In this document: in pieces, positions 2,913-36,092 of the stretch
How positions within the stretch are numbered: position 1 is the stretch's first letter
Layout of the letters: every line of letters starts with the position of its first letter
Origin: Oopsacas minuta
Taxonomy: Eukaryota > Animalia > Porifera
Assembly: GCA_024704765.1 (NCBI GenBank)
Contig: JAKMXF010000310.1
Coordinates: forward strand, 248,001 to 312,000
DNA length: 64,000 nt
Reading direction: 5' to 3'
Made by a program: the position numbers and the translations under genes
Notes under the pieces: model-generated
The model's input: only the letters and a program-made list of their open reading frames with translations
The model's database searches: none
Told to the model about the DNA's origin: nothing

Positions 2913-4374
2913 TAATTATCTTTATTGTCTGAATTATTCTAATACTTTTTATAAGATACAAATCAAAACTATATATACACAAATATTTGAGAATGAGAAG
3001 TGAATCACTATTATATTTGCACACAACGTAAAGTAATGAATACAAATGCATAGTAGAGAAGCCATGGACGAATATAAATGAAAATTCCAAAAGGATTCCT
3101 ATAGATAAATTCAGTTATTGTTAGTACAAATTTATAGTAGCTCATTCGATGCATATTATAGCGCTTCAATCTCGGAAATTGGCCAAGTCATTGGGTTTAA
3201 GACACATATATTTGAGGTTAATTAGAGATTGGAAAGTGTATAATGATATCATCATATATTGAGTTGTAAACAATTGTTGTCTGAAAGTGACTAATGGTGA
3301 CGAGTTGAATTCCTTTGGATAATTATCTGCCAAATCATATTCAATTGTGAGTGACGACAGAGTTCTTCTCACACAGAGAAGTGATATTAATCACACATTG
3401 TGGTCAAGGTATTGCATTCTTTCTACGAAAGAGCGGAGTGGAAATATTGAAGAGAATTATAACATTTCCTGATACTTGATTCTAATAACAGATACTCTCG
3501 TATACTACGGTTAATAGGGTCACATTGGGACCAGGTCATTTTGACCCCATTAAGCCGAATTAACCATAGTATTTTAACTAACTAACCCGATTAACTCTGG
3601 CTCTACTTATAAGCGGAGTCTATTGTGTTTGCTCTGACAAAAGATCGAAATAACGAAGAATTTACACGAGAATATTCGTCGTTGTTCCAGGCCTTTGAGG
3701 TACTACTGGCTTGTTGTTAAGGGATTTACCCTGGGTTAGTGACCATATATGCTTCGATGTTGTTTAAGGTCATTTGAGGAGCTCCTGCGTTGGTTGGATG
3801 TTATTCTATAAACTGGAATGAGATGTGTAAATAAAAGTAAGCATGAAATTAGATCAGCTGTTGTATGGGCAGTATGGCTAATAAAATGGTTGGTTTGTAT
3901 GATTGTAGAGAATACAATCAGCAATCGCATGGGTGAATGGTACTGAATGCTGAAACGTTTGCGTTTTCCAAGTGAAATAATGCATGCCTGTGGTTGGGGG
4001 CTGTTTACACAATCGCTGGGGCTCTAGGAACACCAGTTGTGGGACTAAGGCCTAGCTACTCGAATAATCACCCTTCCAATTTCAATAACATTACTATAAT
4101 TGACTTTCTCCCTAATCTCTGGAATGCTTTGATTCCTTTTCGTCAAAAGTTAGTGTACTCACTCATATCCAGTCAACTCCAGTTATATTGAAGCTCAAGC
4201 GTTGGCGAAAATACTTCGATATGACTGCGGTGTGCGATATAACCGTGTTTTATCAAAAGAAAAGTAGACATTACCTATGTTTAACATTCGAAAGCCTAAA
4301 GTATGAATGCACTAATGTTTGCGGCTCTTTTTACCAATTTTGATAAATATTGAATAGGTTCTGCAATTCTGTGA

Positions 4375-4628
4375 CAGAGATGGACTGGTCAGGGTTTTGG
4401 GTGAAATCTTGAGCTGCCGGTTAAACTATGACTATTTTGCTAGACTTTGAACCTCGAAATAACTCAAATAATACTTATAACTTGTGTAAGTAGATCTATT
4501 TTTCATTATTGAAGGAATTCTACTACGTATATTATGATGAATAAGATTTAAGCGCATTCTTATCAACACACATGATCCAACGATCGTTCGGGTCGGGTCA
4601 TAAAAATTGCTGACCGGTACCACCTCTG
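4375..4628. mobile_element. hAT-type MITE (same family as 51613-51968)
   Basis: Ends CAGAGATGGACTGGTC / GACCGGTACCACCTCTG; flanks TTCTGTGA / TTTTGTGG (6/8, decayed TSD); GGTCGGGTC subterminal motif. Confidence 0.65.
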
Positions 4629-4822
4629 TTTTGTGGATCATAAGCTTTGGAATGTGTATGTGATACAAAAAGAACAAAAATCAACTAGAAAGATGGTATC
4701 TATGTTAAATCAGCTTTTGGGTAAAATGCGATCAAGTAAAATATTAAATAGAAAAACAGAAACTAGTACTATGTATAGAGATAGTTCTATTTATAAATAA
4801 TAATTAATAAGTGTTTTGTTAA

Positions 4823-7402
4823 TTAACTAATAAAATGTATTTCACCACCAGACAATAGCATTATGTGTTCATTTGTCTCATCAGAGAATGCTCTTATCAT
4901 AGTATTCGTAAGTATTTTACCATCAATATTTGTACATTTTGGAAGAGAATTTAGATACACTGAATCTTGATTCAAATTGATATGTTGATAATATTGCTTA
5001 AAATCCATTGGTCTTCTATATTCCTCATCAGCTTGCATCTGGTTAAGTTTGTAACTATGAACAGAGCCATTACATACATCCAGGACATAGATTCTGTCAT
5101 TAAATGTAGTTATACAGCAGGAAAGAGACAAGATTTGAGATATTCTATATGATCCTGTATATTGCAAGTTGTTAATGTTGCATACTTGTAAGTAATATTG
5201 AGTTTTGTTAGAAGTAGACGAATCTTGTTCAAAGGAATGACAATAAAAACCGCGGTTAAAATCACCTTTAGTTCTCGTTTCATTATATTTCGCACCTATT
5301 TTTGCAGTAGCTGTATGTAGAATTAATAACAGATTTGAATTTGTAGTAGATCTCACAATATCTACAAAACAAACGTTTCCAAGATTCCCGCTTGAAGTGA
5401 GGTTAATTATATTTTCTTTAACTCCAGTTTGAGTATTTACTTTATTGATATTAGGAGAGTCAATACACGCTATGTACACAGAATTATTCCCATAAAATGT
5501 GTATATTTTGGGATTCAGAATGGTGCCAATTTTGTTCAAATCTAGTTGCCTGAGAATTTCCCCTTTTTCAGAATACACATAGAGAATATTGCCAGACATA
5601 ATAACGACAGAATTATACAAGAGAGCAATAGAAGAGTTTGTTTGGAATGCAGCTGGGATAGTTACTTTAATAACTTGCTGTTTTGTCAAGACATTATGAA
5701 TTTGTTTGTAAGTTTTCCAGTGAGAATAAAACAATGCATAATATACCTTAGTAGTAGAATTGTATGTAACATCAGATGGTATGAGCATCTGGCTTGAAGT
5801 CACTTTGTAACTCTTATGCTTTTCAGGAATAAACGGATTATCAACTGTATGTACAGTCAAGAATTTATTCAAAGTTTTCTGTATATCCTGTTCAGTTTGT
5901 TGATTAACATTAACAGAAAATGAATCTGAAGGGGTACAGAAATCATGTACAAACAAAGAATTATCCTCTAGCTTATCACAAGGCCTATCACTGATATCAG
6001 TTACATAAGAGTACTTACTCAGCATGCCTACATAACCTGTATATGTAATCATTTGTTCCAATTGCTGAATACTATCTTCTAATGGAGTAATCAGTGTCTG
6101 ATAATTGTGAGACAATTCTCCTAAGAGATCTTCTTTTCTAGTCTCCAGCTGTTTGCACATCTGTTGAAAGAATGTGAGCACCTGTGTAGTCTGTTCATTC
6201 CATTTAATTTCTAGATTGGATTTCCTATCTTCCAGCTGACTGATACGAGACTTAGCTTCCAAGATGCACTCTTCTTGCAACTTATTTGTTGATGACGTAA
6301 TAGGAATATCTTTGTCCTCAGAATCAGGATGATCTTCTTTCGTTCCAATGCTAGAATCTGTGGAATATATATAATTTAATAAAAACACCCATTACACCCC
6401 GCACCTCATAAATAATGGAGTCTAAGGAATAAGTCATGGTCAGTGGCAACTAGGATCGACCGGGCCCGGGTCGATCTCTTGTTCATCAAGTACAAACTAA
6501 GAGCTGTTGGATTTGGCTCATTCAAATTACTTCAACCACCTCCTGACGTAGTTCTTCCTAATCAACATGTCGAGGAAATTGATGATGATAGTGAAGATTT
6601 GATATAAGCAAGATTTAGATAGATTATAAAGATACGTATATATTTTGATTTAGTATCTCGCATTTAAATTTCTTAGTTCCAAACCTATGATGTTTGCTTT
6701 TGAAATAACTCTACCATAAATTTCATTAAACACCCGACTGACCAAGGGTCGGATTCTCAACTTTTTGGCAGGGGCTCCCGTCGATCCCTAGTGGCAACTC
6801 AATTCATTTGCAGGCAAATATTCGGAAATTTTAGAAATAATATATGTATTTAAATAATGATTGTCCTATAATATCAAACTACCTCTTGTATAATTTTGTA
6901 TACTTGTTAGAATATCCTGTACAGAAGACTCCTGCAGTGTGTGTAGCTGTAGTATGAGATGTCCCATGTTATACTTCTCATGACTCTTCAAATCAATCTT
7001 ACAAATAGTAGCATTACATTCTACACAAAAAGCTACAGCTGCTTCACTTGTGTCTCCAGACACACAGTCAGTACATCTGAGATTATCTGTAGTCTTCAGT
7101 TGTTTGAGCTTATTGATTAGTTCTGGTAATGGATTGCTCTGTAGCTCTAAGCTATCATTATCATAACTGGGACAGAGTGTACACTGTATTGACTCAGTTT
7201 CTTCTTGTTCTACCTTCTCATCAATACAGGTCTTACAGAATGAGTGTAGACAGGATAGGAATGTCGCTCTTTTGACAGATTGCTGACAAAAATGACAAGT
7301 GAATGTCACATCATTGAAGTGTTGTTGCCTCTTACTAAAATCTACATTATCAGTATCATATTGAGGCTCAGTTGGCGGAAAGTCAACTATTCTTGTAGCC
7401 AT
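4823..7402 (-). CDS. TRIM/RBCC E3 ubiquitin ligase (RING, B-box, coiled coil, probable beta-propeller-like C-terminus), 2 exons, ~684 aa
   Basis: Exons 7402-6883 and 6357-4823; 525-nt phase-1 intron (AG|GTAGTT...CCACAG|AT); 2055 nt total. RING: CHFC...CLHSFCKTC...CTLC. B-box: CTDC...FCVECNATIC...H...H. Coiled coil: EAKSRISQLEDRK. Confidence 0.85.
6441..6800. mobile_element. decayed hAT-like MITE in the TRIM intron
   Basis: Left CAGTGGCAACTAGGATCGAC versus right GTCGATCCCTAGTGGCAACTC (imperfect inverted repeat); no TSD recovered. Confidence 0.4.
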
Positions 7403-8068: not shown

Positions 8069-11000
8069 TTATTTAATGTTTAAAGTGGTAGAAGGATGTT
8101 TGTTATCTGAACCTTGAAATAGTTCATTATATACATCTTCTGGATCAATAGCAGGGATAAATGTAAAGTCAATCAGATCATCCTCTTGTTTCATTTTCTT
8201 ATCTTCTTTTGGAATTATGGGAGATGTCGGCGCCTTTCTATTTCTCTCTACTTTGTTATCAATATCTAAGAGGAGATTAGGAGCAAATATAGCGTCAGCT
8301 CTATCAATGTGAGTAGCATCAAACTCAGAAAGACAGCTGGAAGAAACACGTACATAGTCTAGCAGTAGATCCTCATGGTTAGCATTATTTGTATTAGCAT
8401 TTGTAGGAGGTTGAGGTAATGTGAAGATAGCAGGAACTTCTTGTTTCTTCTCCATTTTAACTAGAACCACAGGGTTGTTCTTGTTTGGAGTTTGAGATGT
8501 TTTTCTTGATTCAGCTGCTTTTTGTTTGTTGTAATTAGGTGGGTAGAAAATAGTGCGATTATCTTTATCATATTGTTTAGGAGCTGGAGGAGAGGGGGGC
8601 GGAGGGGCGGAGGGAACAACAGGTGGTAACTGAGGAGATGATGTCACTTGCGTACTACTTGTTGGTACTGTCGCATGCATTTGTATAGATGTGTTATTGA
8701 TGATATGTTGAGGGATTAGAGGAACCTGTGAATACACACCACGGATATTTGAGGATGTAGGAAGGTTAGCTGGTGATATGGTAGTATTAGCATCATTGGG
8801 TATAGAAAGATTGGATATGTAATGAGCTATGTTAGGTTTTGGAGGTATCTGAGGGAGAGGTTTCCTCTTACCCTCCTCTTTCCAGATGTCTACGTCACGT
8901 GTGGAGTACACAAGAAGCTCGGGTTGATACCTGAGAATACAGGTGAAATGAATAATGGCGTATTATCAAAAGATAAGATTAGAATCAGGGTTAAACGGGC
9001 TCGAACTGAATATGAGTATCCATGAATAGCAGCGGTATCGAATATTGCATACTGACAATATTAGGTTCCATTAACCCTATGCCAACTCGGTTAGTATGTA
9101 TCGTGAATATATGTACTAATTTTCGTTTCCCGAGGGTTACATCTTATCAGAGTACTATTGTACTGACTGAATACTGATATTCGGTTTCAGGTTGGTAAGC
9201 GAATTTCAACTATTTGGTTGCAACCATGATTCTAATTGGATCTCTATTCTGCTGTCTAATTTTTTATTGTAGCTAGAGAAGTCATATTATGCATTACTAA
9301 TTAATGTGGATTAGAAATAATTATATACTTTGCCCTTTTGATCAGTTGAATGACATCATCCCAATTATTTCCCACTTCTCTGAAGCTAGCATCATCACAG
9401 AATATCCACTTAGATAAGTTAGTGTTGTATACAAAAGCTGAGAAGTGATGTCCGTAGTAATTAATAATTCCTAAGAGAAAATACTCCTTATTCCCAGCTG
9501 TTTCATCCAGACTCACACTGAACATCTAAAATATATAACTGAAACCGAATCATGAATATTAGCAAAGCATGGATCATAGAGAATTAACTAAAACGTAAAA
9601 CGGATATAACGAAATGCCGGATTATTCGAATCTGTTCACAATTAAATTACACTAGCTTATATCTAAGTAAATATCATAGCCCCTAGCCTTGAATCCATGA
9701 TAATTACTGATCTTTAATCGGAGCAATATAACAGGAGTTGACTGTACTTCACTCACCTGTTTAATGTTAATACAGTGTCCTACAGACTTGAGAACATCTA
9801 CCACTCTCTCTTTAGTAGAAATCTCAGATGACCATGACAGAGATAGGTTGATTGTGTAAGGAGATCTGAGAAGCATAGTCTCTACCTTAGCTGATTTCTT
9901 ACAATCTGACTATAGGAAATAATTATCAGACAATTATTTTAAGTATAATAGACATAGTATCATAGAACTATTCTTACACTATCAGGACATTTGTGTTGTT
10001 TATCAGTTGTAAGACACTCTTTGAGTACTTTACCAAACGCATTACCATCTCTCAGTATTTCTTTATGTGAAGTATGCGATTTCTTCATAACCTTACTATG
10101 TATTAAGTTATATAATAATACAAATGTAGAATATCTTCAAAATTATACTCACAGTAGATTATCAGCTGATATATAGAACAGAATATCTTCAGATGGGAAC
10201 GGTTCACTAGTAGCTCCACACTCACACACATCCTAACAATAGCAATACAGATAATAGATTGTACGTATGTGCGTGTGTGTGTATTGTTATAACTGACTAT
10301 CTGACAGGATGAATAAGAGAATATTTTGTGGGGAAGACACTTAGCATGAGTACAGGTTGTAGCCCAATCTGTTCCTGTTATTTGTGTATGAAGTTGTCTC
10401 AGTACTGCTTCCTAATACAAGATATAAGATGATAATTATTAATTAATCAAATTAATACAGTGAATAGCGGTGCAGCAGGACAGATGTTAAATGTTAATGG
10501 ATTAGCGTGAATGGGTACCCCTGTGGAATAGATGCCAGCGTTTTTACAACGCTACATTGGTATAGCTTGGCTTTTCACCAGGATATTCTAACAATCGTTA
10601 TTTTCTAATGAATTAATTACTACTAGCGCGCATCGCTTGCTAGGTCACTACACGACAGCTTAGTGTCTCAGGTTAGCTTAAGTATTTAACAGGTAATTTT
10701 CTTAGTACTTTTGGCCTCTACGCGGCAATATATACTCGACACTTCGTACCTCGAATGTATGAAATAACAGAAACGTTTTATCAAACTACAGTAGAATACG
10801 GTTAATATATAAGGGGGCGAGAGAGTATTACTTCGCCCCCTATCACCCCCTCACCCCAAATATTTTGTCTAGCCCTGGAGCGTCGCCACTGGGGGGGGCA
10901 TAGGGGGCAATGCTCCCATGGTAAAAATCCTTGCCGCGGAGCAATGCCCTCCGGTAAACGCCCAATTTTCCAAGCAGGATAATCACACAAGACATAGAAT

Positions 11001-12640
11001 GATAGTAAAATTGTGCCATCATGTTAATTAATACGCTGAAACATTTAGCCTAATTGCAAACTGTAAAATTTCTGCTTGCTTCGCTCGCATTAGTTACATT
11101 TCTACTTTCACTGACTGTCACGACTTCGAACAACTTTGGCCTGAGCGTGAGTAAGTCAGGTAATGTGAGTTCTACTGTACTAAATGATTACTTACGTAAC
11201 ATTCTACAGCATAATCCATCTTAGATAACTGGAATCTACCTGTATCCTAAGGGAGAGATTAGTTAAATATAACAGAGCAGAGGTAGATATACAACAAACC
11301 GACAGGTTAGCTAATATTGATAATCAGTAAACAGTCAAACTATACAGAAAATACTGATGTCTAAACCTAATTTTGCTTTCTAAGCTACCAATTTCAAAGT
11401 ATATGCACTGTGTTCTTAAGTATCGGAGAACCAATCTTAGTTAAAGAATATAACTAAACTTGAAACGTATTTGACGTATTAAACAACATGAAAATACTAA
11501 ATGAATCTAACATAGAGATGTAGGAGTTTGAATGAACAGACGGGTGTGGCCCTAGATCGAGCAGGACCACTACTTCTCTGAAAGAAAATACTTAACCAAC
11601 TTACCTTGTAACACTTAGCCATAGCCTTCCTGACAAAGTTTGGTGGTAAAGTTATCGATTCTGAATATTGAAAATTAACAAATAACTCCTAGACAATGAA
11701 ATTGTAACATGAATAGCAATTAGCGTACATAGAATTATACTAAATTCGATAACCTATGTATAGTAACTAGCTGTCACGCAAATATTGAGGAAGGCGATAA
11801 ATCTAACAGCTTAGAGGCATCTAAGGCGATTTAGGTGGGCAAATGCCCATCCATATTTCACTCCATCATTTTACAAAAGTATAGGCCGTGTGGGCATGAC
11901 GTATCTTTGCCCACCCTGACTCATGATCCTGCTTGCGACAATGCATCACAGTTATGAGAGATGGGGGATGACTAATATGAATTCACTATTCAGTCATTTA
12001 ACAAATTTTATCCCATAAAAAATACGTTTACTGCCAATAATGGAATATTCCGTTTACAATCACTAATAATAATAATATACCTTGAGTGTGCAGAATACAC
12101 ATTCTTGCTCATAACACACATGTTCCTGTAGCTGTCCGAAATGACTCCTGAATATGTTCAGATGCCAGAGAACCTATAGAGAGGAAGGGAGTCAGTCAAC
12201 TCGTGCATATTTTGATCACTAATCGTCTTTAATTTTGGTCAACTCGTACCAATTTTTCGGTCAACTCGCCCCTATAATTGTTTTTCAACTTGTACCTATT
12301 CTACTCCGCTCGATGTTGTCTTAGAGTATTTCTTATTGCTTGTGGACCCAGATTTTTTCTTGTACTAGTTATACACGAACCTCCAGCTGCTGATCAGAGA
12401 ATTTTAGTTCCCTCGATGTTGAGTTGACTAGGGACGAGTTGATTTAGATGCTAGTTGAAATAGCTACGAGTTGACTGGCAATCGAGAGGAAGAATAGAAA
12501 CTCATTAATACGATACAATACGACATGTAATTATTCAAAAACAGATATCTTACTTGAATGACAGAATTAATAAAGCAGTTATTCTCTCCACTAAAGTTTG
12601 AGAGTCCGTGAGTAGTAGCTTCGTTGTCAGCTACAGCCAT
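8069..12640 (-). CDS. USP53: USP53/USP54 (Echinus)-family ubiquitin-specific protease, 10 exons, ~612 aa
   Basis: Exons 12640-12554, 12173-12081, 11688-11605, 11246-11196, 10411-10298, 10232-10153, 10095-9978, 9909-9757, 9525-9329, 8930-8069; 1839 nt, phases consistent. Motifs GLSNFSGENNCFINSVIQVLW, FQLSKMDYAVECY, YYGHHFSAF, WIFCDDA and KYQPELLVY match the USP53/54 family. Pro-rich tail. USP53 versus USP54 orthology is not resolvable. Confidence 0.9.
10789..11177. mobile_element. pogo-type element with a nested GC-rich hAT-like MITE remnant, in a USP53/54 intron
   Basis: TA|CAGTAGAA... and ...TTCTACTG|TA ends; internal GGAGCGTCGCCACTGGGGGGGG block at about 10877. Confidence 0.5.
12188..12483. 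mobile_element. MULE-type MITE with 9-bp TSD
   Basis: GAGAGGAAG is duplicated at 12179-12187 and 12484-12492; inverted subterminal GTCAACTCGT repeats at both ends. Confidence 0.75.
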
Positions 12641-12789
12641 ACAGTGTATTGCTGAGAATTTTCTTCACAGATCTAATTATGTTAATAAGTAAAATTAATG
12701 ACTACATAAGTTATCTACAGATGTTCTAAGGAATATTTGATAGAAATGCACTCTAATTTTCTGCAATTACATTCATCTGATATTCAGAT

Positions 12790-12920
12790 CAGGGGCGCCG
12801 AAATCACTCACAACTTGAACGATCCAGGGGGCTTACACATGTATATTGTATTAGCTCAATGGGGCTATAACCAAACGAGGGGGCTCGAGCCCCCTAGCCC
12901 CCCCGGGTTCGGCGCCTCTG
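12790..12920. mobile_element. hAT MITE (131 bp)
   Basis: TIR CAGGGGCGCCGAA / TTCGGCGCCTCTG; perfect 8-bp TSD ATTCAGAT. Confidence 0.9.
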
Positions 12921-13434
12921 ATTCAGATACTATACGATTATTTTTCATCGCGTAAATGCGGGCAGCTCGAGAAGCGAAGCGGCTCGTATATATTACAGTT
13001 GGCGGAAAGATAGTTACAGGGAACATTGGTTGTCACTCATGAAGAGCTTTACGCGGGAAATGTCATTCGCGAGATAAATTTATGAGTTTTCTCGGATTAG
13101 TTTTGAGTGCCACATTCACCCTACAACAATCCTTTCCAATCCTTTCCAACTCTTTTCACGTCGTTACGACAATCATGTATCATAATTAGATCTAATAATT
13201 AATGCATTATTGCGGATTACCCATCCTAACAGATTTACAATTCTTTTCATGCACATTAGAGGATCATAATAATTAACTTTGTTGTAGTAATACAATACAT
13301 CTAAGGAATAATATAATAACTATTGGGTGCTATATCATCTAGATAACTGGAAATAGGTCTAATTATTAATGAATGATCTACTTCCAGTATTTAAGAGAGT
13401 TAAATTACAAATAAATAGACTTTATATATCTATC

Positions 13435-14130
13435 ATGGGTGGGAACATATTCCATATATTCGCACTATCTCTGTTGCTTACAATAATTTCTGTCACAGAA
13501 TGTAGAATCCTATCCGAAATTCCCGCAATCACACCAGTTAGAAATGATAATACTCGGATTAATGTGGGGGTGCAACCAGCTGAAGATTATGTTGCGTTAA
13601 TTGTAAATGAGAAAGTTAGACTTATTCAGAATGAACTCTACACCGCGAACGAACAACTCTCAAATGCTAAAGATGAACTCGTTAAGAAGGATAATGAACT
13701 GAAACTACTCAAAGCGGATCTCCAAGATAGAGTTACTATGGAAGCTAGACTCAAATATGCTATTGCTAATGCTACCATCAGTGGCGATGGGTGGACTTGC
13801 AACACGCCTAATCCCATGATATATCCAACAGGTGATAGGTATTGTTGGATTCCATCTGGTAACTGGGTGAACTTTGATCTAAAGGAGAAGTTTACTATAA
13901 ATCTCATTCGTTTTCGTCTGTATGATCAAGATGCTCGTGTCTATACCTATAACCTACACGTTTCTTCTGATTACAGGAATTGGATTAGCATAGCTGAAGG
14001 TGCAACTGGACAATCTGCTCAAGAGTACTTACTGAAAAAAGCCCTGCAAATCCGCTATATCAAGATGGAGGGTCGTAATACTTTAAACGCGCAGCTCCAC
14101 TTGAATACTTTAACGGTAGATTGGGTGTAG
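13435..14130 (+). CDS. secreted protein: signal peptide, coiled coil and BTBD9-like F5/8 type C (discoidin) domain, 231 aa, intronless
   Basis: ATG at 13435 is followed by hydrophobic IFHIFALSLLLTIISVTEC; heptad region follows; LYDQDARVYTYNLHVSSD...W...IRYIKMEG resembles the BTBD9 C-terminal discoidin (LWDCDDRSYSYYVEVS). Confidence 0.75.
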   Translation: MGGNIFHIFALSLLLTIISVTECRILSEIPAITPVRNDNTRINVGVQPAEDYVALIVNEKVRLIQNELYTANEQLSNAKDELVKKDNELKLLKADLQDRVTMEARLKYAIANATISGDGWTCNTPNPMIYPTGDRYCWIPSGNWVNFDLKEKFTINLIRFRLYDQDARVYTYNLHVSSDYRNWISIAEGATGQSAQEYLLKKALQIRYIKMEGRNTLNAQLHLNTLTVDWV

Positions 14131-14434
14131 AGATCCAAAATTTTTAGGTGTTGCCGAGATTAGATTGTAAACTTGTAATTTAACATATTCGTGGAGATTT
14201 AGTTTGTATTTTTGACATTCTTTTGTATTAGCCTATTTAAATTTGTACAATTTGAAATAATACTCAAATGTGATTTCTTTGGGCTAAAATATATGCAATC
14301 AAGAGTTGTGAAAAATAAGCTATAGAGTATAGCGGGTTATTATAATATGTAATGACAAATTAAGTGTAATGCGCAGACTGCAGAGCCGATCGACTCGATA
14401 GAGGTCAATAGAGACACAGGCATACACCGAAATA

Positions 14435-14590
14435 CAGTAGACTCTTGTTAATACGTACTCGTCATCCGGAGTACGTATTATCCGAACTAATTTACAATGA
14501 AAAGGCATCGAAGCGGACTGATAAAGTGTACAAATCAGTACCCCCTTATCGGAGTTAAGTCTTAACAGTGTTCGTATTAATAGTTCATCC
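14435..14590. mobile_element. pogo-type MITE with decayed right end
   Basis: TA|CAGTAGACTCTTGTTAATACGTAC left end matches the family. Confidence 0.5.
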
Positions 14591-14669
14591 ATCAAATCAT
14601 AAAATGCAGAAAATTTTACTCAATATTGAATTAGTATGAAATGAGAGAAATATACTCCATATATCTATC

Positions 14670-15340
14670 ATGGTTCTGAACATATTTCATATATTCGCAC
14701 TATCTCTGTTACTCACAATAATTTGTGTCACAGAAGGTAATGACAGAGTTGACAACTGTCCCAGCTGTGAGATGCCATTTCGTCTGTCTACTACTGACAT
14801 CAACAGATCATCTCTCACAAAAATTACACTCTAGCTCTGTAGATGGATATGGTGATTTCAGAATAACTGTTTCACAAAACTCAACTAATTATCACATTTA
14901 TTCGACTAGGATAAGTCTTACAAATTGGCCTTTTGATGCTCAATGTAGAATACTATTCGAAATTCCTACAATCACGCCAGTTATAAATGATGATACACAG
15001 CTTAGGGTATTGTTTCCATCTTTCAGATATTTCCTTGTAAATCTTCAACCAGCTGAAGAGCATATTACATCACTTTTTTATGAGAAAGTTGGACTTATCT
15101 AACACGAAACAACAACTATCAAATACTATAGATGAGCTCGCTACTACGAATAAACTCACAAACAGCAGATGAATTGAAATTACTCAAAGAGGAATTAGAA
15201 AATAGAATTACCATGCAAGCTAAACTTAAATATGCTATGGCTACTGCAACAATAATATGATATGATTGGAGATGTCACACGCCTAACCTGATGCAATTCC
15301 GACAGGTAATAGGAATTATTGGATTTCAGCTGGTAATTGG
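14670..15340 (+). pseudogene. pseudogene paralogue of the secreted discoidin gene
   Basis: Near-identical signal-peptide coding sequence (ATGGTTCTGAACATATTTCATATATTCGCACTATCTCTG); frameshifts; TAA at 15100-15102; truncated early in the discoidin region. Confidence 0.8.
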
Positions 15341-26990: not shown

Positions 26991-29900
26991 CTATAAGTAT
27001 ACAGGATTGATAGAGGGAGGTACTCCTCGGATAGGTTGGTATTGATCTACCCTATCTACCATCTTGATACAGTCTACTATTGGACACACAGACACACACA
27101 GAGTACAACCAGTACAATCAGCTGTTACATGAGGAAGGTGAGTTTGTGGATCAAATGTTATAGATTGATAGCCTGAGTCGTTACAGACCATGTAACACTT
27201 GCCACAGTTTATACACATGTCCTCTTCTATCAGGGCTACAACTTGTTCCGTATTACTCAGGTCTCCGTATGTACCGATCAGAGGGAGAGCTCGTCCTATC
27301 TGCTCCTTAATAGAAGAAATAGGTTTGTTGGGTTGAAACAGTTTCCTCTTGGGGAGAATGTTATCCTCCAAAAGTGAAGACGTCTTCTTGATATCAGAAA
27401 GCTTCTCACTTCGTATTCTAGAATATTCTCCAAAGTTAGGCACATTATTCCCGATCTCTTTCTCCAGCCTAACAGACACAGGCTTTCCTTTCTGATGACG
27501 TAATGTAGGTACAGACTGACCAGTCCATTCAGCCAATTCTTGTACAGACTGTTTGTATAGTAGCGCCTTCAGTCCTGATAGATAGTCATCCACTACAGTG
27601 AAGTCTTGGTTCTGAATAGCAGAACACACCTGCAGAACTGAAGCACCTGTTTGTAGGAACTGCAGTCCTACTTCAGCGCTGTCTATGCCACCTGCAGCCA
27701 TTATAGGGAAACCAGGGATAGCACGTGCAATAGAAGACACTATCTTGAGTGCTATTGGCCTGGTAGCATTTCCAGACATGCCTCCATACGTGGTACGCTT
27801 GGCTCGTCCTACAGCTGGCCATGCTACAGCCTCACTAGTGAGTCCCATCAGTCCAGACACAGTGTTAATAGCTGTCACACCATCTGCCCCACCCTCTTTA
27901 GCTGCCATAGCTATCTCTATAGCCTCTGTTATATTAGGAGTTATCTTGGCGAAGAAAGGAATTTTGACTGTCTCTCTCACCCATCTGCATATGTTCCTGA
28001 CGAGTTCTGGATCCTGTCCACAAGCAAGACCCATCCCTCGTTCACCCATTCCATGGGGACAGGAAAGGTTCAGCTCCAGAGCATCAGCCCCAGCCTCTAC
28101 ACTCTTCTTAGCTAGTTGCGTCCAATCTTCTCGTGAATATCCACACATTATACTTGCTACGACGATTTGTTTGGGAAAATCCTTCTTTAGTTGGTTGATA
28201 CACATGAGCCAGTAAGCAGCTGTCTTTTCTGTGATAAGCTCAATATTCAAGAATGAGCCTTGGCCTGGTCCGAATGAGTGTCCTGAAGTTGTTCCTCTCA
28301 CAATACGAGGAGACACATTTGTAATCAAGTCCTTATCCAAACTGAAAGTCTTTGTTACAGCAAATGACCATCCAGCCTGGAAGGCCCTCCTGATCATAGC
28401 AGCAGAAGTGGCAGGAGTTGCAGAAGCTAGACCGAATGGATTCAAGAAGTGGAGTCCTGCCATATCAACTGACAAATCTATTGTATCGACAGGAGTGTAG
28501 AACTTAGGCAGAGCAGGTTCAGGAGGGATGAAAATGCCATGAAGAGACTGTAGATATTTGTGCATGAACCAAGCTGCTTGCTTTCCATCATTCACACACT
28601 CCACTGTAGTCTGAGACACGCCCCCCAGATCTCCCCCTAGATACACACCTGGTACAGGTGTCTCCATTGTCTCTTTGTTCACCTCTGGAAAGCCCTGAGT
28701 ATCGAACTGTACTGGAGACATCGCAGCCTTTAGCTCCTCACTCTGTAGACTGGAGCCGAATGCGGAAATAATGTAACTAGCCTTTATACGTACAATCTCA
28801 TCGCTCAGTTCTAGCCAGCTCCCGTCGTCTTGCTGCTCAGTGCGACAGAACTCCATGCCCAGGATCTTGTCTCCTACCCTGAGGACACTCTTGGGGGAGA
28901 GGAAGGGGATGAACTCACACATCTCATCTCTGGCTACCTCCATCTCTTCTGGTACCGCTCTGATCGTAGTGAATCCCTTTCTAAATATGATATACACCCT
29001 CTTAGCACCACATCTGAGTGCTGAAGTAGCACAGTCAAACGCAGTGTCTCCTGCTCCCAGCACAATAACCTTACCATTCATCTGCGGTAGACTCTGCTTA
29101 CAGCTGCACATTCCGCGCTTGCTAGCACTAGCCACCAAAGGGAGGAATTCTTTTGAGGTGTAGAAACCGTTCTCTGCAGTTAGACCATCAAAGATAGGGA
29201 TCTTCTTAGGGGAGGGAAGTCCAATTCCGATAAACACACCCTCGTGACCTGATTCCATCAGAGACTGGAGAGAGAAACCGTTCTCGCCAAGACTCTTCCC
29301 TCGCTCTACTCTCACCCCGAGGTCTTTCATCAGCTCCACCTCATACGTCACTACTTCTAGAGGCAGACGGAACTCAGGAATCTCAGAACTGCTCAGACCT
29401 CCAACAAACTCCTCCTTCTCATACACAGTCAGGTTCTGGTATCCCAGACGAGCTAGAAAGGTTGCACAAGAGATGGAGGCGGGTCCACAGCCGATGAGTG
29501 CCACTTTAGCCTGATAACTGTCAGGTAACTCTGTGAGAGGTGGGAGAGAGGGATCACGAATCTGTGGCAATCCCATCTCCTTGAATACCTCTGTAGCGAA
29601 TTGCTGGAGACCGCCGATATTGATTGGACCCTCTTCAGTGGCATCGAGATTGCACCCACCCACACACAGGTCACTCGTGGGACACACCATCCCACAGGTG
29701 AGTCCCAGGGGGTTGTCAGAGAAGATAGCCTGGGCTGCTCCGTAGTAATTCTTGGTAGCAATGCTGGAAATAAAGGCTTTAATGTCGATCTGAGTGGGAC
29801 AGCTTTTCTGACAGGGAGCATCTGCACATTTGAGACATCTATTAGCTTCACGCAGAGCACCACGCTCACTCAAGGTAGTGTGCTTTACATCATCAAAGTT

Positions 29901-30092
29901 ATTCGTGAGACTTGTACAAGAGTTGCATTCCTTGTCTGTGTTACGTTTCCAATGTCTTCTTGAGTTCTTTGTTTGTGACGTGGACACGAGAGAAGCGTGT
30001 TGTTTGATTCGAGGATTGAGAGTAAGTAGATTCTCTATGTCAGGAGGGTCTCTAGTGAGGTTTTGATAAGTACTCATGCTAGAATCATGCAT
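26991..30092 (-). CDS. DPYD: dihydropyrimidine dehydrogenase [NADP+], intronless, 1033 aa
   Basis: [14 protein letters not shown] and [11 protein letters not shown] (Fe-S); [10 protein letters not shown] (FAD); [10 protein letters not shown] (NADPH); ELNLSCPHG (catalytic Cys); [11 protein letters not shown] and [12 protein letters not shown] (ferredoxin). Confidence 0.98.
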
Positions 30093-30203
30093 ACAAATAA
30101 ACTGAGTAGAGGTCGCAATGGACTGAATTTTTGGTCCGAGCCCGGCAAACCCGACCCGACACTCATCCCCATCTCTAAAACGCTAGTGATAAAGGGACAC
30201 TAG

Positions 30204-32138
30204 CAGGAACGTCGCCAGGATTTTTCACATAGGAGGAGGGGGGCAAATAAATTACCGGGGGGGGTACGAAGTTCCAAGTGACAGGACGATGGGCAAGGGG
30301 TTTCACGGATTTAGCAGGAGCATGCCCAGTGGCGGATCAATAAATTTTTAGTTCGGTAGAACCATCCAGCGGAACAGTTGCGTTGCGTGACTTTGATATA
30401 TAGGGGGGCACAAATTCAATCTGGTTGTCAACAAGTTCTAGATGTTTCCTACCAGATTGAATTTGTGTACCCCAGATTTCAAAGCCTATGGGCGCTTTAA
30501 ACAATCAGTAAGGTCCAAGAGCCAAACAACTGAAAGAAATAACGTATGGTCTGCAATTTCCCCAGAAAGTTGTTTTTTCTGGTCGAGTAAAGTGTAGCTC
30601 GGAGAATATTTGGGGGGGGCAATCACATATGCACGACGCTACTGCAGCTGGGGGTCTGGGGTGCTGTAGGTCTTCCAGTCGTGATGGGGCGTAGCCCTTG
30701 GACAACAAGCTATAATAGCTACTACATTAATTACCTTTGTACTGCCACGTAGGTTTGAATCTTGAAACGATTTCTCAGCTATATTTTAGGAATAAATAGT
30801 GAAATCTTTAAACAAACAACGAGAAGTTATCAATTATTATATCAATGGAGGCATCGACCGGAAAAATAGTACGATAATCATTGAACAGTAAATCGACATC
30901 AGAAACTGGAACATAGGAAGAGGAATGTGGAAGAGAAGTGATCGGTGTCATAACTGGATTGAGTTCGAATATATTTTTCTTCCGGGACTTTTCTTAAATT
31001 TCTTGGGAACAACGCGAGGAGTCTTCTGAGGGCTAATATGGGGAGATCTGTCTCGGACGCCATTAACAGGTTCCTCTGGGTTGTCATTCCTCCTATAACC
31101 TCGAATAATCCGGCATAGAGTCTTTTGTTGGAATGTTTAATATTCTTATATTCCACATCTCTCGGCCAGAATGAAGGTACAAGAGATGCGTCCTTCCAGA
31201 AGGACACATTCTTTCCTAAAATGTAATGCTTAATCACAGCGTTAAACTAAGGCGAGTATGAAGAACGGTATCTTCGCACCGAATTCAAACGAATGTCTAA
31301 AATGTATCATCGTTGAGTCAGCAATTCAGGATAAATTTGGCGTAACATAATCAAGAATATGTACATATAATCGCATAGTCAAGTATTCGTATCTGTCAAT
31401 AAAATAAACTCACCAAGTGAGCGTTTAGTGATCCAAGACACTAGTCTTCGAAGCGTTGGGACACTGTAGCTCTCTAAATTTCCATCTAACTGATCGAGGA
31501 TTTCTTTGTCTTGATTGGACTTCTCACTGTCTGTCTCACGATGTAAACCAACTATTGACCCACAAAATTCATTCTTCTGAGAATGAATCAAATTTTGGAA
31601 ATTCTCAGTCCCCATTGTAGCTAACTTCCCTCTCCGCGTAAATACGACCCCAATACTCTCTCCCGTAATGGAACGTAACTGCTTTAGAGTCGAAGAAAGC
31701 TTCTCCCGAGCATTCGAATTAGTCATTCTAGGCATGGCTATTTCTGAAAAAAGTAGAACAATTCAGATAAAACTTGAGTACTCAAAGAAGTGAAATTATA
31801 TAAGTGACGCACAAATATTTGAATATAATGCAAAATCGTGCCCCAGCACTCAAATAAATATATGACCCAGAAGCCTAATTATATATCTACACGTCAGTAA
31901 TTAAGTTTAGTTTCATCTGCCTATAGTATGCTAGTAGCGCATGGCTAGGTACTATTTAATGAGTTCGGCAGATCAATACAAGCTATATCCCTTATTTATG
32001 GGTGAGATTAAATATTATTGAGGGTGACCGAAGCGAGCCGAAATTCTCCAGTTTGCAATTTAAGCCAGGGGGTCCGGTGGCATGCTCAGGGCACGAGTTT
32101 ACCAGGGGGGCGCATAGCCCTCCATGGCGACGTCCCTG
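30204..32138. mobile_element. non-autonomous hAT-ended element (1935 bp) carrying an NRF1-like gene
   Basis: TIR CAGG(A/G)ACGTCGCCA; perfect 8-bp TSD GACACTAG at 30196-30203 and 32139-32146; no transposase seen inside. Confidence 0.88.
30899..31735 (-). pseudogene. NRF1/Ewg-like DNA-binding-domain gene, copy 1 (2 exons, one -1 frameshift)
   Basis: Exon 31735-31414, 198-nt phase-1 intron (G|GTGAGT...TTTTAG|GA), exon from 31215. Spliced LESYSVPTLRRLVSWITKRSLGKNVSFWKDASLVPSFWPRDVEYKNI aligns by eye with NRF1 VDKMTQAQLRAFIPEMLKYSTGRGKPGWGKESCKPIWWPEDIPWANV. Adding one A in the run at about 31123-31126 gives KKTLCRIIRGYR. Confidence 0.65.
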
Positions 32139-32426
32139 GACACTAGTGTTATGGGATTATTTGCTTGCAGGTATTATAATTATTCGGGTTAAAATATACC
32201 AGCCAACAACCACGGGGTGGCCAATAAGTTGGACAACAGTTCTGGAAAAATATAGAAAGTTAGTAACTAATCCTAGGGAAAGAGGTATTAGAATCCCCTG
32301 AGAGCACGCTCCTATGGTTTCTTGTAGGTGTAATATATTGTAAATATATACATATTAGGAATTGTAAATATTTTGTTTATTTACAATTTCAGGTTCAGCA
32401 GGATCTGGATCAGTAGACATATGCAC

Positions 32427-32982
32427 TAGGGCCGTTGACGAATCCTCGTTATCTAAGATCCAGGTATCGAATCCTTGGGCACAGAATACCCGGGTATAAC
32501 CGGGTACCCGAGTATTTGAATTACAGTGGGGTTACATGCTTATTTTCTTACCAGAAAAGCACGATAAGTCGAATATTTCAGGATCAAATTTGTCATGTTC
32601 TCTACCCATTATACTACAATATATGTTAGCCAATCAAACTAAATAGCAATATGATTTAATACAATGGCTAATTAAAAACCTATCGCATTATCTTGTCATC
32701 AACTAGTAGTAATTATTCTGCCAGTCCACTATTTTGTAGTATTCTTGAAATGACCTTTGAGAAATACTAATCATCCAAGGAGGCGTCACTTAAACTAGAT
32801 CTTAACATCGTGTTGAAAGGCCTGCTGCGGAAAATGCACTTTCAGCTTCTACACTGGTAGGAGGGATAGTATATAGGGACTATGCTATTTCTTGTATAAT
32901 ATTATATTACCCGAGTACCCGAGGCTTCAATTACCCGGGTATCGAATATTAATGGAAATTTTGGAACCGGGTTCCACCACTA
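32427..32982. mobile_element. hAT-like non-autonomous element
   Basis: TAG...CTA ends; flanks ATATGCAC / ATATGTAC (7/8); repeated TACCCGGG/TACCCGAG subterminal motifs. Confidence 0.6.
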
Positions 32983-33188: not shown

Positions 33189-35278
33189 GGGGGCGCTGCA
33201 TTAGGTCGAATTCCGTGTGTTGGCATTAGGTCGAATTTTATATGTATGCATTAGGTCGAATTTCATTGTTTACATTAAATCGAATTCCAATTGTCTTATT
33301 CATTAATTGATTAATTTCTAAATAGATGTGAGAATTGAAATTTAATGTGAAATATGAAATGTGTAAAATACTACTTAACCAGGTATTCATTGTAAAATGT
33401 ATAAGAGATGTTAATTAAGAAAAATTTGAAATTTGCCTTCAATTATGCCTCTGCACGTTGGACAAGTCTGTTGAAGTTGATCAATTGTGTCACTACACTG
33501 TGTGCAACAATTTGCATGCCTGCAAGGCATGAATACCCATGTGCTGCTCCTTGTTTGTAGGCAAACTACGCATTTATTTGTTTCAATACTACCAAAAGAT
33601 TCAGGCTCCTCTAACATATCAGAATCATCTGAATTAATTGTGTCTTCTAATGAAGTAGCATTGCCTATATAGCAACTAATTCTTTCGAGAAATTGTATGG
33701 GAGAGTAACTCCCACTTAACAGTTTTTCTTTGCAGCGCTTTCGATGTTCATTATTCATTACGTTCTTCTTTTTGCTTGGTCTCGTTATCTCTCTTCCTTC
33801 CTGTATCCAGGCCATTTCATTATCATAGTCAGCAATTATATTGTTAATGACAGTCAAGAAATTCCAAATTCTTGGATGGCTTGATTTTATGATGGACTTT
33901 AATTTTCCATGATAACTTTCTGCTGCATTGTTTGTTACATATTTAAGGTTAAAGATTGACAGTTCTTCAGGACCAATTTTAGTTAGCCACTGCTTCTCAA
34001 AATAATTCAAAAATACTTCAAGTTTCTTCATTTGACTCTGTTGCAACGTTGGAATTTGAAGAAGGTTGTATATTGGAAGAATCAATTCAGCTGGAAGAAA
34101 CGGAATTGCCATAATCTTCTTAACGAATGATGCACATTCCAAATTTCCTCGGCAAGTCGAAGCCAAACCATACTTTTGAGTTTTTCTCCAAATAGCTTGC
34201 GTATAATGGAACCAGCACCCGTTCACCCTAATTCCTGGATAAACTCGCTTGACAGCATTCCGAGCTGCTTGTTCCCAATCTGACATTGCGCAATCCGGTT
34301 CTAGCTGAGGAACAAGTTCTCGTATCTTCTGTATAACTGCCACGTATAGCTCATCATCTTTATTAGTCAGCAAGCAGTGAACGGCTGGAATTGCATGTCT
34401 CCCAACTGTAAGAAAAAGAGTCCACAATTGGTAAAATTGTTTAGGTACGGTGTAGAATGTCCCGTCAAATTGGATATTGGGTAATATCTGCGAGTAGATC
34501 GTATAATTTGTCAGAAAAGAAAATGACAGCTATCCGACCATCTACAATGACAGTAGCCTTATGATTTACTGCAAAGGTTGTTGTGGGTAGAACTTCACTA
34601 AATTCACTAGCAGACTGTGGGATCATAGGTTGTAATATTTTCCTTGTCCGAAACATTGACGATTCACATTCTTTAAATGTGACTTGAGAAGCAGAGGGAT
34701 TTGATCTCGTAACATCGTTGAATATGTGTCTCAGATTGTGTTGCGAGGTTTGAGATGTTGTTTTGCACTGTTTTAATTGCATATACTTCAGCACGATAGT
34801 CTTGTAACCCATGATTATGTTCTGACTTAGGATAAATCAAATTCGTAGCATTTCCAATTTCGCACTTCCTTTACAGCCTTTCCTGAATAGTACACATCTT
34901 AAGTAGAGAATATTTTCTATAGATTTATGACAGAAGTATTTGTAGCCATCAGAGGAGGTGTAACTTTTCCAGTATTACGTTTGTATTGGTCGAATGAATA
35001 TTCCATGATGCACGTACACAATAATGTACATATTATAATCATCATCCAATTTATAATAAATGAACAATAGGAACTGTTAGTATGGATTAAACACCAAAAT
35101 TGTTATTATTAGTAACAAAGTAAAACATTTGAACGAAACCTACTACATGCAACTAGAATTCGACCTAATGCCAACACACGAAATTCGACCTAATGCATAC
35201 ATAGTAAATTCGACCTAATGCCAACACACGGAATTCGACCTAATGCCAACACCGTAATTCGACCTAATGCAGGCACCC
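33189..35278 (-). mobile_element. MULE (Mutator-like) element with RING-fused transposase
   Basis: 9-bp TSD CGAATGCGC (33180-33188 and 35279-35287); inverted subterminal arrays of GCATTAGGTCGAATT (3 plus 1 degenerate at left, 5 at right). Confidence 0.9.
33411..35006 (-). pseudogene. Zn-finger (FLYWCH/WRKY-like)-MULE-RING transposase, frameshifted in the 5' third
   Basis: ATG 35006; LRCVLFRKGCKG...HNH; after a +1 frameshift at about 34480, FDGTFYTVP; MSDWE, CWFHY and TNNAAESYH; C-terminal CVVC...PCRHANCCTQC...CPTCR. Confidence 0.88.
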
Positions 35279-35439: not shown

Positions 35440-36092
35440 CTAGTTTACATATGAATTTATTGGCTCTTTCGTTATTCTATCGATTATTGGCGATCTATCA
35501 CGAGTGCAGTTGGTCACAACATCTACAGAGTCAGTAGAATAGAAGGCCCTATAAGATCTGATAATTTCTAGCAGATGGCCTTTTGATTTGAATTTTAAGT
35601 CGCGGAGTGGAATATATGTCGGCCACCACAAAGGTTGGTACTCTGTTCGTCCCCAATAATCGCGGAGCTTACCTAAACGATATGAATCAATATTTATGGC
35701 GTATCAGAGAATGTTTATTATCGTTTATAGTCATTAATATATAAGACAAAGTAAAATGCTGAAAATATATATTTGACAAACTAGTAGATTATTGTGTAAT
35801 CAGCGTTGAGATTTTTCTGAGTGCCAATATTGCAACACTCGAAATCTTCATTAGAGATGAGGTCTAATAAATGTTCCTCATGTAAAGGTTTAGAAATAGT
35901 ACATATATTAGGACAGGCAACAGATCTCCAAATTGGAACATTATAGTTGGTGACAAAATCTTTGAACTCTTGGCTGTCAATGATGGATAGTTCGCCTCTC
36001 CAAGTAAAAATGAGGCCAAATGATTCCCCTGTAACGGAATTGAACCGCTTGAGAGTATTACTTAGAATAGCTTGTGCGTTCCCAATGGTCAT
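35440..36092 (-). pseudogene. NRF1/Ewg-like DNA-binding-domain gene, copy 2 (2 exons, frameshift and stop)
   Basis: Exon 36092-35782, 109-nt phase-1 intron, exon 35672-35440. LSNTLKRFNSVTGESFGLIFTWRG matches copy 1 LSSTLKQLRSITGESIGVVFTRRG. Exon 2 reads YWGRTEYQPLWWPTYIPLRDL. Frameshift at about 35825 and an in-frame TAA just before the donor. Confidence 0.62.

Follow-up and report, generated by a model that had tools for sequence, protein, structure and literature searches.

By definition, the filler of a Pack-TIR, a non-autonomous transposon that has terminal inverted repeats (TIRs), comes from a unique parental locus that is not itself a transposable element (TE); the single-copy Pack-TIRs of animals have been explained by gap filling that does not depend on transposition (Tan et al., 2021, PMC8277862). 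Here we describe a 1,935-bp element of the glass sponge Oopsacas minuta, located at 30204-32138 of a 64,000-nucleotide stretch of contig JAKMXF010000310.1 (this whole stretch is hereafter called the window). Similar to Pack-TIRs and Pack-hATs, it is a non-autonomous TIR element in which TE sequence flanks a piece of a gene taken up as DNA, with the intron kept. In contrast to Pack-TIRs, its filler has no unique non-TE parent: it consists of one end of a different, multi-copy transposon, including a part of the accessory gene of that transposon. The locus is a TE-in-TE chimera rather than a Pack-TIR proper or a duplication of a host gene. We consider it quite probable that it is a hAT-type shell with a cargo derived from a Kyakuja-Dileera-Zisupton (KDZ) transposon, that this cargo was captured as filler, and that the gene piece is a dead passenger.

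KDZ transposons with accessory genes have been described, for example, the TET/JBP-carrying families of fungi (PMC12730594). Like these, the parent of the cargo has pieces of a KDZ-type transposase, an 8-bp target-site duplication (TSD), seen in the derivative L001 (see below), and a second gene that does not encode a transposase. Unlike in the TET/JBP-carrying families, the accessory gene of the parent encodes an NRF1-type domain, a Ulp1-like protease, and a PHD finger. The parent protein resembles NRF1, EWG, and P3A2 (PF10491; 8K4L, 8K3D; PMC10810270), as a MADS/SRF-like dimerisation domain is predicted to precede the DNA-binding domain (DBD). It also keeps the NRF1 residues R206, W224, P231, W234-P235, D237, and N242, and the ends of the parent transposon contain GCGCATGCGC. 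It differs from NRF1 in having lysine at the position of R244, a shorter stretch between N242 and the last helix, and an N-terminal half so diverged that HMMER does not connect it with NRF1; moreover, it is fused to the Ulp1 and PHD parts and is multi-copy and transposon-borne. By analogy, it could be compared to the Myb/SANT protein encoded by the second open reading frame (ORF) of PIF/Harbinger elements, which is also a transposon DNA-binding protein separate from the transposase and presumed to recognize the ends, although both the fold and the superfamily are different. In the literature searched, no paper describes a transposon-borne NRF1 domain or an NRF1-Ulp1-PHD accessory gene.

The shell and the cargo

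The element is abutted on both sides by the same 8-nt sequence, GACACTAG; an 8/8 match at that spot is expected by chance with the probability of 1.5e-5. Its inverted ends (30204-30217 and 32125-32138) are 14 nt long and complementary at 13 of the 14 positions (93%). The left TIR is CAGGAACGTCGCCA, and the right one, TGGCGACGTCCCTG, reads CAGGGACGTCGCCA inwards from the tip. The motif is scarce in the window, with 3 matches at ≤2 mismatches versus 0.16 expected. The ORF list of the window contains no transposase-like ORF inside 30204-32138. The first-pass annotation, made from the letters of the window, had reported 14-bp TIRs and an exact TSD around a two-exon gene with no transposase, and the ends, the ORFs, and the splice sites bear this out.

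The short TIRs of hAT transposons begin with 5'-YARNG. The right tip, CAGGG, conforms to this rule, and the left tip, CAGGA, is one base off. The duplication of GACACTAG has the 8-bp length required of the hAT superfamily, although such TSDs are not exclusive to it, as Zisupton-type elements make them too (PMC12730594). Judging from its sequence, the outer shell, which measures ~870 bp without the cargo, is a non-autonomous element of the hAT type; this label is based on the 8-bp TSD, the terminal CAGGG, and the membership in a multi-copy family. The TIR of the element was not found in the sequences L001-L004 (L004 is O. minuta JAKMXF010000031.1). A metagenome scan with the 17-nt right TIR yielded 120 loci, all of them chance matches of 17-24 nt, and a word-index search with the ORF encoded by the miniature inverted-repeat TE (MITE) produced no match. 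The possibility that the outer element is a deletion derivative of a KDZ transposon was considered and rejected, as its ends, CAGGGACGTCGCC.., bear no relation to those of the KDZ elements, CATATATTAAA..GTAC..GCGCATGCGC.

Logan contigs of four runs, three from one sample and one from a close relative ('organism B'), were aligned to 29900-32700. The contigs of the source sample are identical to the window over 29900-30330 and 32081-32480/32522. As they cross both junctions without differences, the insertion and its junctions are not assembly artefacts. The summed contig depth, an approximate measure of the copy number, is 20-70x that of the flanks in the left arm of the shell (30276-30840) and 15-36x in the right arm (31968-32155), and only 2-9x in the cargo. 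In other contigs, the left arm runs directly into the right one (30833>31965, 30865>32031, 30884>31962, and 30517>32029), and a further joint, 30227>32090, corresponds to a mini form of ~100 bp. A contig of organism B is similar to the window down to 30209 and unlike it from there on. The arms, 30204-30892 and 31961-32138, belong to a multi-copy sponge family, and the arm depth, the arm-to-arm joints, and the end of the organism B contig indicate that the other members of this family carry no cargo.

The left arm contains an internal palindrome at 30403-30473. A diverged relative of the right arm is found at 10875-11090 of the window. It matches 32026-32060 over 35 nt and has the TIR-like end CTGGAGCGTCGCCA; the other end of this relative was not found.

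The cargo between the arms, judging from its DNA identity, is a fragment of a KDZ-class transposon and not of the host NRF1 gene. It comprises the KDZ terminal repeat, the promoter region, exon 1, the intron, and the truncated exon 2 of the accessory gene. The closest sources are copies of the KDZ transposon, with 93-98% DNA identity. In particular, the cargo is 94.4% identical to L004 over 9881-10845 and 89% identical over 9455-9574, and its identity to L001 is 93%. The homology to L004 ends at 30893 and 31960. At the latter boundary, the cargo starts ~5 nt inside the KDZ tip (ATTAAATAGTACC...), the last ~5 nt of the tip (CATAT) being absent. At the former, it stops after ..PVSDVD, that is, at residue 215 of the 385/405 residues of the parent protein, in the middle of exon 2; other copies in the contigs run on from 30893 into ..SSxSEGFLPG, as the parent protein does. 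The terminal repeat in the cargo is degenerate, with one TGCGC half-site intact (GCGCATG at 31937).

Two further observations concern the cargo. In its promoter region, L004 contains an additional segment of ~306 nt (9575-9880), edged by a short direct repeat, TTTAAGTGCTGG / TTTAACTGCTGG, and present in neither the window cargo nor L001. The 8-mer GACACTAG occurs also at 31437-31444, inside exon 1; as L004 shares it, this occurrence belongs to the parent gene itself. A single match of this kind within 2 kb, counting both strands, has a probability of ~0.06, and this is probably a coincidence.

The NRF1-like gene and its parent transposon

The predicted splice junction of the gene in the cargo, ..KRSVG|KNVSFW.., recurs in the NCBI model of its parent, and exon 2 begins in phase 1, at 31215. 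Splicing would give the product ..LRRLVSWITKRSLGKNVSFWKDASLVPSFWPRDVEYKNIKHSNK, as it had been quoted before. In addition to the intron, the cargo keeps ~225 bp upstream of the gene, and the earlier suggestion that capture took place at the DNA level thus stands. Exon 1 is predicted to encode the first DBD helix, to which R96 belongs, and a MADS-like dimerisation domain, as judged from matches of a model and VIA-align.

The first-pass annotation had suspected a frame problem near 31123. It correctly pointed to a real 1-nt deletion at 31122, in an A-run, relative to L004 and most contigs (a T has to be put in behind 31122), and overlooked both a second 1-nt deletion, at 30983, again relative to L004 and most contigs, and the cut-off of the gene at 30893. 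At 31122, a minority of the contig depth, approximately equal to the depth of the flanks, agrees with the window, hence the deletion seems to be real at this locus. Compared to the parent protein P0004, the gene consists of three in-frame pieces: residues 1-138 with 92% identity (127/138), 140-185 with 98%, and 187-215 with 86%. As it stands, the spliced ORF has 209 codons, that is, 138 native residues followed by 71 out-of-frame codons. The Ulp1 protease and PHD parts are absent from the window copy. Because of the two frame shifts and the missing protease and PHD finger, this gene copy appears to be a dead passenger.

One properly spliced relative is KAI6660641.1 / LOD99_10372 (P0004; longer isoform P0078), and its UniRef name derives from the Nrf1 domain. 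P0004 and P0078 match the Pfam domain Nrf1_DNA-bind (PF10491) with 25.4 and 25.2 bits, respectively, over residues 47-138 (cut-off 23.5, E 1.4e-5). The best PDB sequence matches found with phmmer are the NRF1 structures 8k4l and 8k3d (E 0.011 and 0.016), with a gap-free alignment of 56 residues. The window exon-2 ORF alone has 14.9 bits (E 0.022), below the cut-off. The base-reading residues of NRF1 are R206, N242, and R244 (PMC10810270). In the alignment to NRF1, R96 corresponds to R206, N132 to N242, K134 to R244 (a conservative change), and W114 to W224, and the P..WP.D core is common to both. R96 is nearly invariant across the NRF1-like family, and the window copy retains R96, N132, and K134. 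The NRF1 signal sits at the exon junction and in exon 2; profiles of exon 1 yielded no link to NRF1 by sequence in PDB or among 1.84 billion proteins, and in a Foldseek search of PDB nothing was significant, with NRF1 at rank 11 (E 0.65). Still, the parent being above the Pfam threshold and NRF1 chains being the best PDB sequence matches, the NRF1 likeness seen in the first-pass annotation appears to be genuine.

In the ESM-Atlas, the cluster nearest by features to residues 1-170 of P0004 (score 0.91) is an unnamed eukaryotic family of ~210 aa, commonest in Mollusca, and the next clusters (~0.8) are Nrf1_DNA-bind and a fungal YDR124W-like family. A transposon-type NRF1-like protein may occur beyond sponges.

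The parent transposon is seen in L004, where positions 9454-14919 form a putative KDZ-class element of ~5.5 kb with a 32-nt TIR (91%) holding GCGCATGCGC. On one strand, the NRF1-like gene extends into parts for a Ulp1-like protease and for a PHD finger (27.3 bits for the PHD finger; the C48 match is weak). The opposite strand carries pieces of a KDZ transposase (22.6 bits, E 1e-4), below the PF18758 cut-off of 26.6. The same arrangement is found in L003, with transposase ORF pieces of 17.2 and 14 bits, also below this cut-off, and the NRF1-like genes in both L002 and L003 have Ulp1 and KDZ neighbours. Introns or frame shifts break up the transposase, and the matches are to ORF pieces only. The TIR of L004 and the duplication flanking the L001 derivative (see below) are those expected of a KDZ element, which has TIRs and a TSD of 7-8 bp.

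A search with the exon-1 peptide matched O. minuta proteins. With the exon-1 profile, at least 76 clusters at 50% identity were found among the 1.84 billion proteins, mostly exon-1-sized ORF calls of long-contig ENA assemblies, and a word-index search with the exon-2 peptide returned the self-match only. Perfect copies of GCGCATGCGC are present six times in the ends of the L001 element and once in the right end of L004. The parent protein probably binds these repeats at the KDZ ends.

In L001, positions 3731-5075 are a non-autonomous KDZ derivative of 1.35 kb with the 8-bp TSD GTATAATT on both sides. At either end, a 22-nt unit containing a perfect GCGCATGCGC is present in three tandem copies, and the derivative keeps the promoter, exon 1, the intron, and a part of exon 2 of the NRF1-like gene. 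The Ulp1-like part of L004 reads ..QQQRWCGLQIIRG at 11299-11544, where L002 and L003 read ..QQQ(W/R)GGADCGLFAAA. For this reason, the region of the catalytic cysteine in L004 seems to be frame-shifted.

In itself, the locus is an ordinary, decayed TE-in-TE chimera, one more case of a small DNA transposon taking up foreign DNA. Its value is indirect, as it points to a sponge KDZ family in which what appears to be a true NRF1 relative is joined to a SUMO-type protease and a PHD finger, and whose ends contain the exact recognition palindrome of NRF1. This family bears on the origin of the NRF1/EWG domain and on the recognition by transposons of their own ends. The locus also shows that pieces of the NRF1-like gene pass as DNA from one transposon family to another, and in this way a DNA-binding module could, in principle, reach new contexts.

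Origin of the composite

We suggest that a small hAT-type element landed 104 nt upstream of the dihydropyrimidine dehydrogenase (DPYD) gene, creating the 8-bp duplication, and that 1,068 bp were copied as DNA from a KDZ-class (Zisupton-like) transposon into this shell. The most likely route would be the capture of filler during the repair of a break within the small element (gap filling), with a KDZ copy or an excised KDZ end serving as the template or the inserted fragment. The composite could be moved, at most, passively by a hAT transposase acting in trans. Filler capture is favoured because the boundaries of the cargo map to nearly one point of the shell and there is no TSD around the cargo.

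Several points weigh against this reading. No hAT transposase with matching ends was found, and the name hAT rests on the TSD length and CAGGG. No full cargo-less copy was seen in the Logan contigs. The contig evidence comes from one sample at ≥85% likeness, with just 26-34 nt on the sides of the joints, so that the copy numbers and the cargo-less structures are approximate. No empty site was seen either; the DPYD protein, as the route to an orthologous or empty site, has no exact database record. Finally, capture cannot be distinguished here from a nested insertion followed by a deletion.

The latter is possible, but we regard it as clearly less likely than filler capture. A KDZ element or its short derivative would have entered the shell by transposition, and a deletion would have removed everything from the middle of exon 2 to the far KDZ end. 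This agrees with the right cargo boundary, 31960, lying within ~5 nt of the natural KDZ tip, and with the existence of short non-autonomous derivatives of KDZ elements in which the 5' part of the gene is retained, such as the one in L001. However, the cargo has no 8-bp duplication (30885-30892 is ACAGTAAA, and 31961-31968 is GAGTTCGG), and CATAT of the KDZ tip is missing. Moreover, as the cargo-less relatives go from ~30884 to ~31962, the end of the deletion would have had to coincide almost exactly with the point of insertion.

It is improbable that the truncated gene is alive and yields a short protein interfering with the binding of KDZ ends, similar to the short repressors of other transposons. 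The spliced ORF is open for 209 codons, with R96, W114, N132, and K134 all among the 138 native residues, and the gene has its own promoter region. On the other hand, the frame shift removes the last DBD helices (TLCRIIRGY..), there are two independent frame breaks, the divergence from the parents is 2-6%, and there is no sign of more than one copy. Equally improbable is a wider scenario, in which the composite, with its promoter, one half-site, dimerisation domain, and partial DBD, would be a mobile decoy or poison subunit spread in trans and directed against KDZ transposition, while other copies could seed a host NRF1-like regulator.

The first-pass annotation had offered two interpretations. 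One, a Pack-type element that captured and mobilised a host NRF1/Ewg transcription-factor gene, is now very hard to maintain. The retained intron does speak for an origin at the DNA level, the TIR and TSD are intact, and the NRF1-type domain is real; but the nearest sources, at 93-98% identity, are KDZ copies, down to the terminal repeat and the promoter, the family comprises no fewer than 76 clusters (50% identity), nearly all of which are short ORF calls, and the parent, unlike NRF1, is fused to Ulp1 and PHD. A captured host NRF1 gene was therefore rejected, as the cargo is a KDZ end with its own terminal repeat and promoter; the supposedly mobilised domain is a truncated, twice frame-shifted 5' fragment of a KDZ element. 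The other interpretation, in which an NRF1-like protein is encoded by an accessory gene resident in a TE family, holds for the KDZ family and not for the hAT-type family, whose other members are without the cargo. Hence, the earlier observation is confirmed and the interpretation is partly supported.

We give just as little credence to the view that unrelated MITE ends happen to flank an ordinary gene copy: the TIR is just 14 nt long and no second copy of the composite was seen, but the exact 8-bp TSD has a chance of only 1.5e-5, the two arms are directly joined in other contigs, and in the organism B contig the homology stops at the tip (30209).

Feature coordinates and neighbouring genes

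Coordinates of the composite element, its parts, and the adjacent gene in the window
Feature	Position	Strand	Basis
DPYD gene (context)	26991..30092	-	ORF; Pfam DHO_dh, Fer4_20, Fer4_21, Pyr_redox_2
Left TSD copy, GACACTAG	30196..30203		Read off the sequence; identical to 32139-32146
Left arm of the putative non-autonomous hAT-type element	30204..30892	+	TIR pair, contig depth, joints to the right arm
Cargo, 5' 1,068 bp of a putative KDZ-class transposon	30893..31960	-	Identity to L004 and L001; loose contig end at 30893
Truncated exon 2, two frame breaks	30893..31215	-	Comparison with L004 and P0004; contigs
Intron, 198 nt, GTGAGT...TTTTAG	31216..31413	-	Splice sites; conserved in L004
Exon 1, residues 1-107 and the first base of codon 108	31414..31735	-	ORF, donor G|GTGAGT, P0004 identity
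Degenerate KDZ terminal repeat	31931..31960	-	Alignment with both TIR arms of L004 (9454-9485, 14888-14919), which contain GCGCATGCGC
Right arm of the putative hAT-type element	31961..32138	+	TIR pair, contig depth
Right TSD copy, GACACTAG	32139..32146		Read off the sequence

The element lies on the upstream side of DPYD, 104-111 nt from its ATG, and the insertion could affect the DPYD promoter. DPYD is intronless here, being one uninterrupted ORF of 1,033 codons.

At 35440-36092 (-) and 33411-34427 (-) of the window, a second, far more divergent NRF1-like gene adjoins a MULE transposase that is fused to a RING finger. This gene has 45% identity over the first 47 residues and is apparently frame-shifted near the end of exon 1. 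A FLYWCH-MULE ORF is likewise located just upstream of an NRF1-like gene in L003, and thus the pairing with MULE is seen twice.

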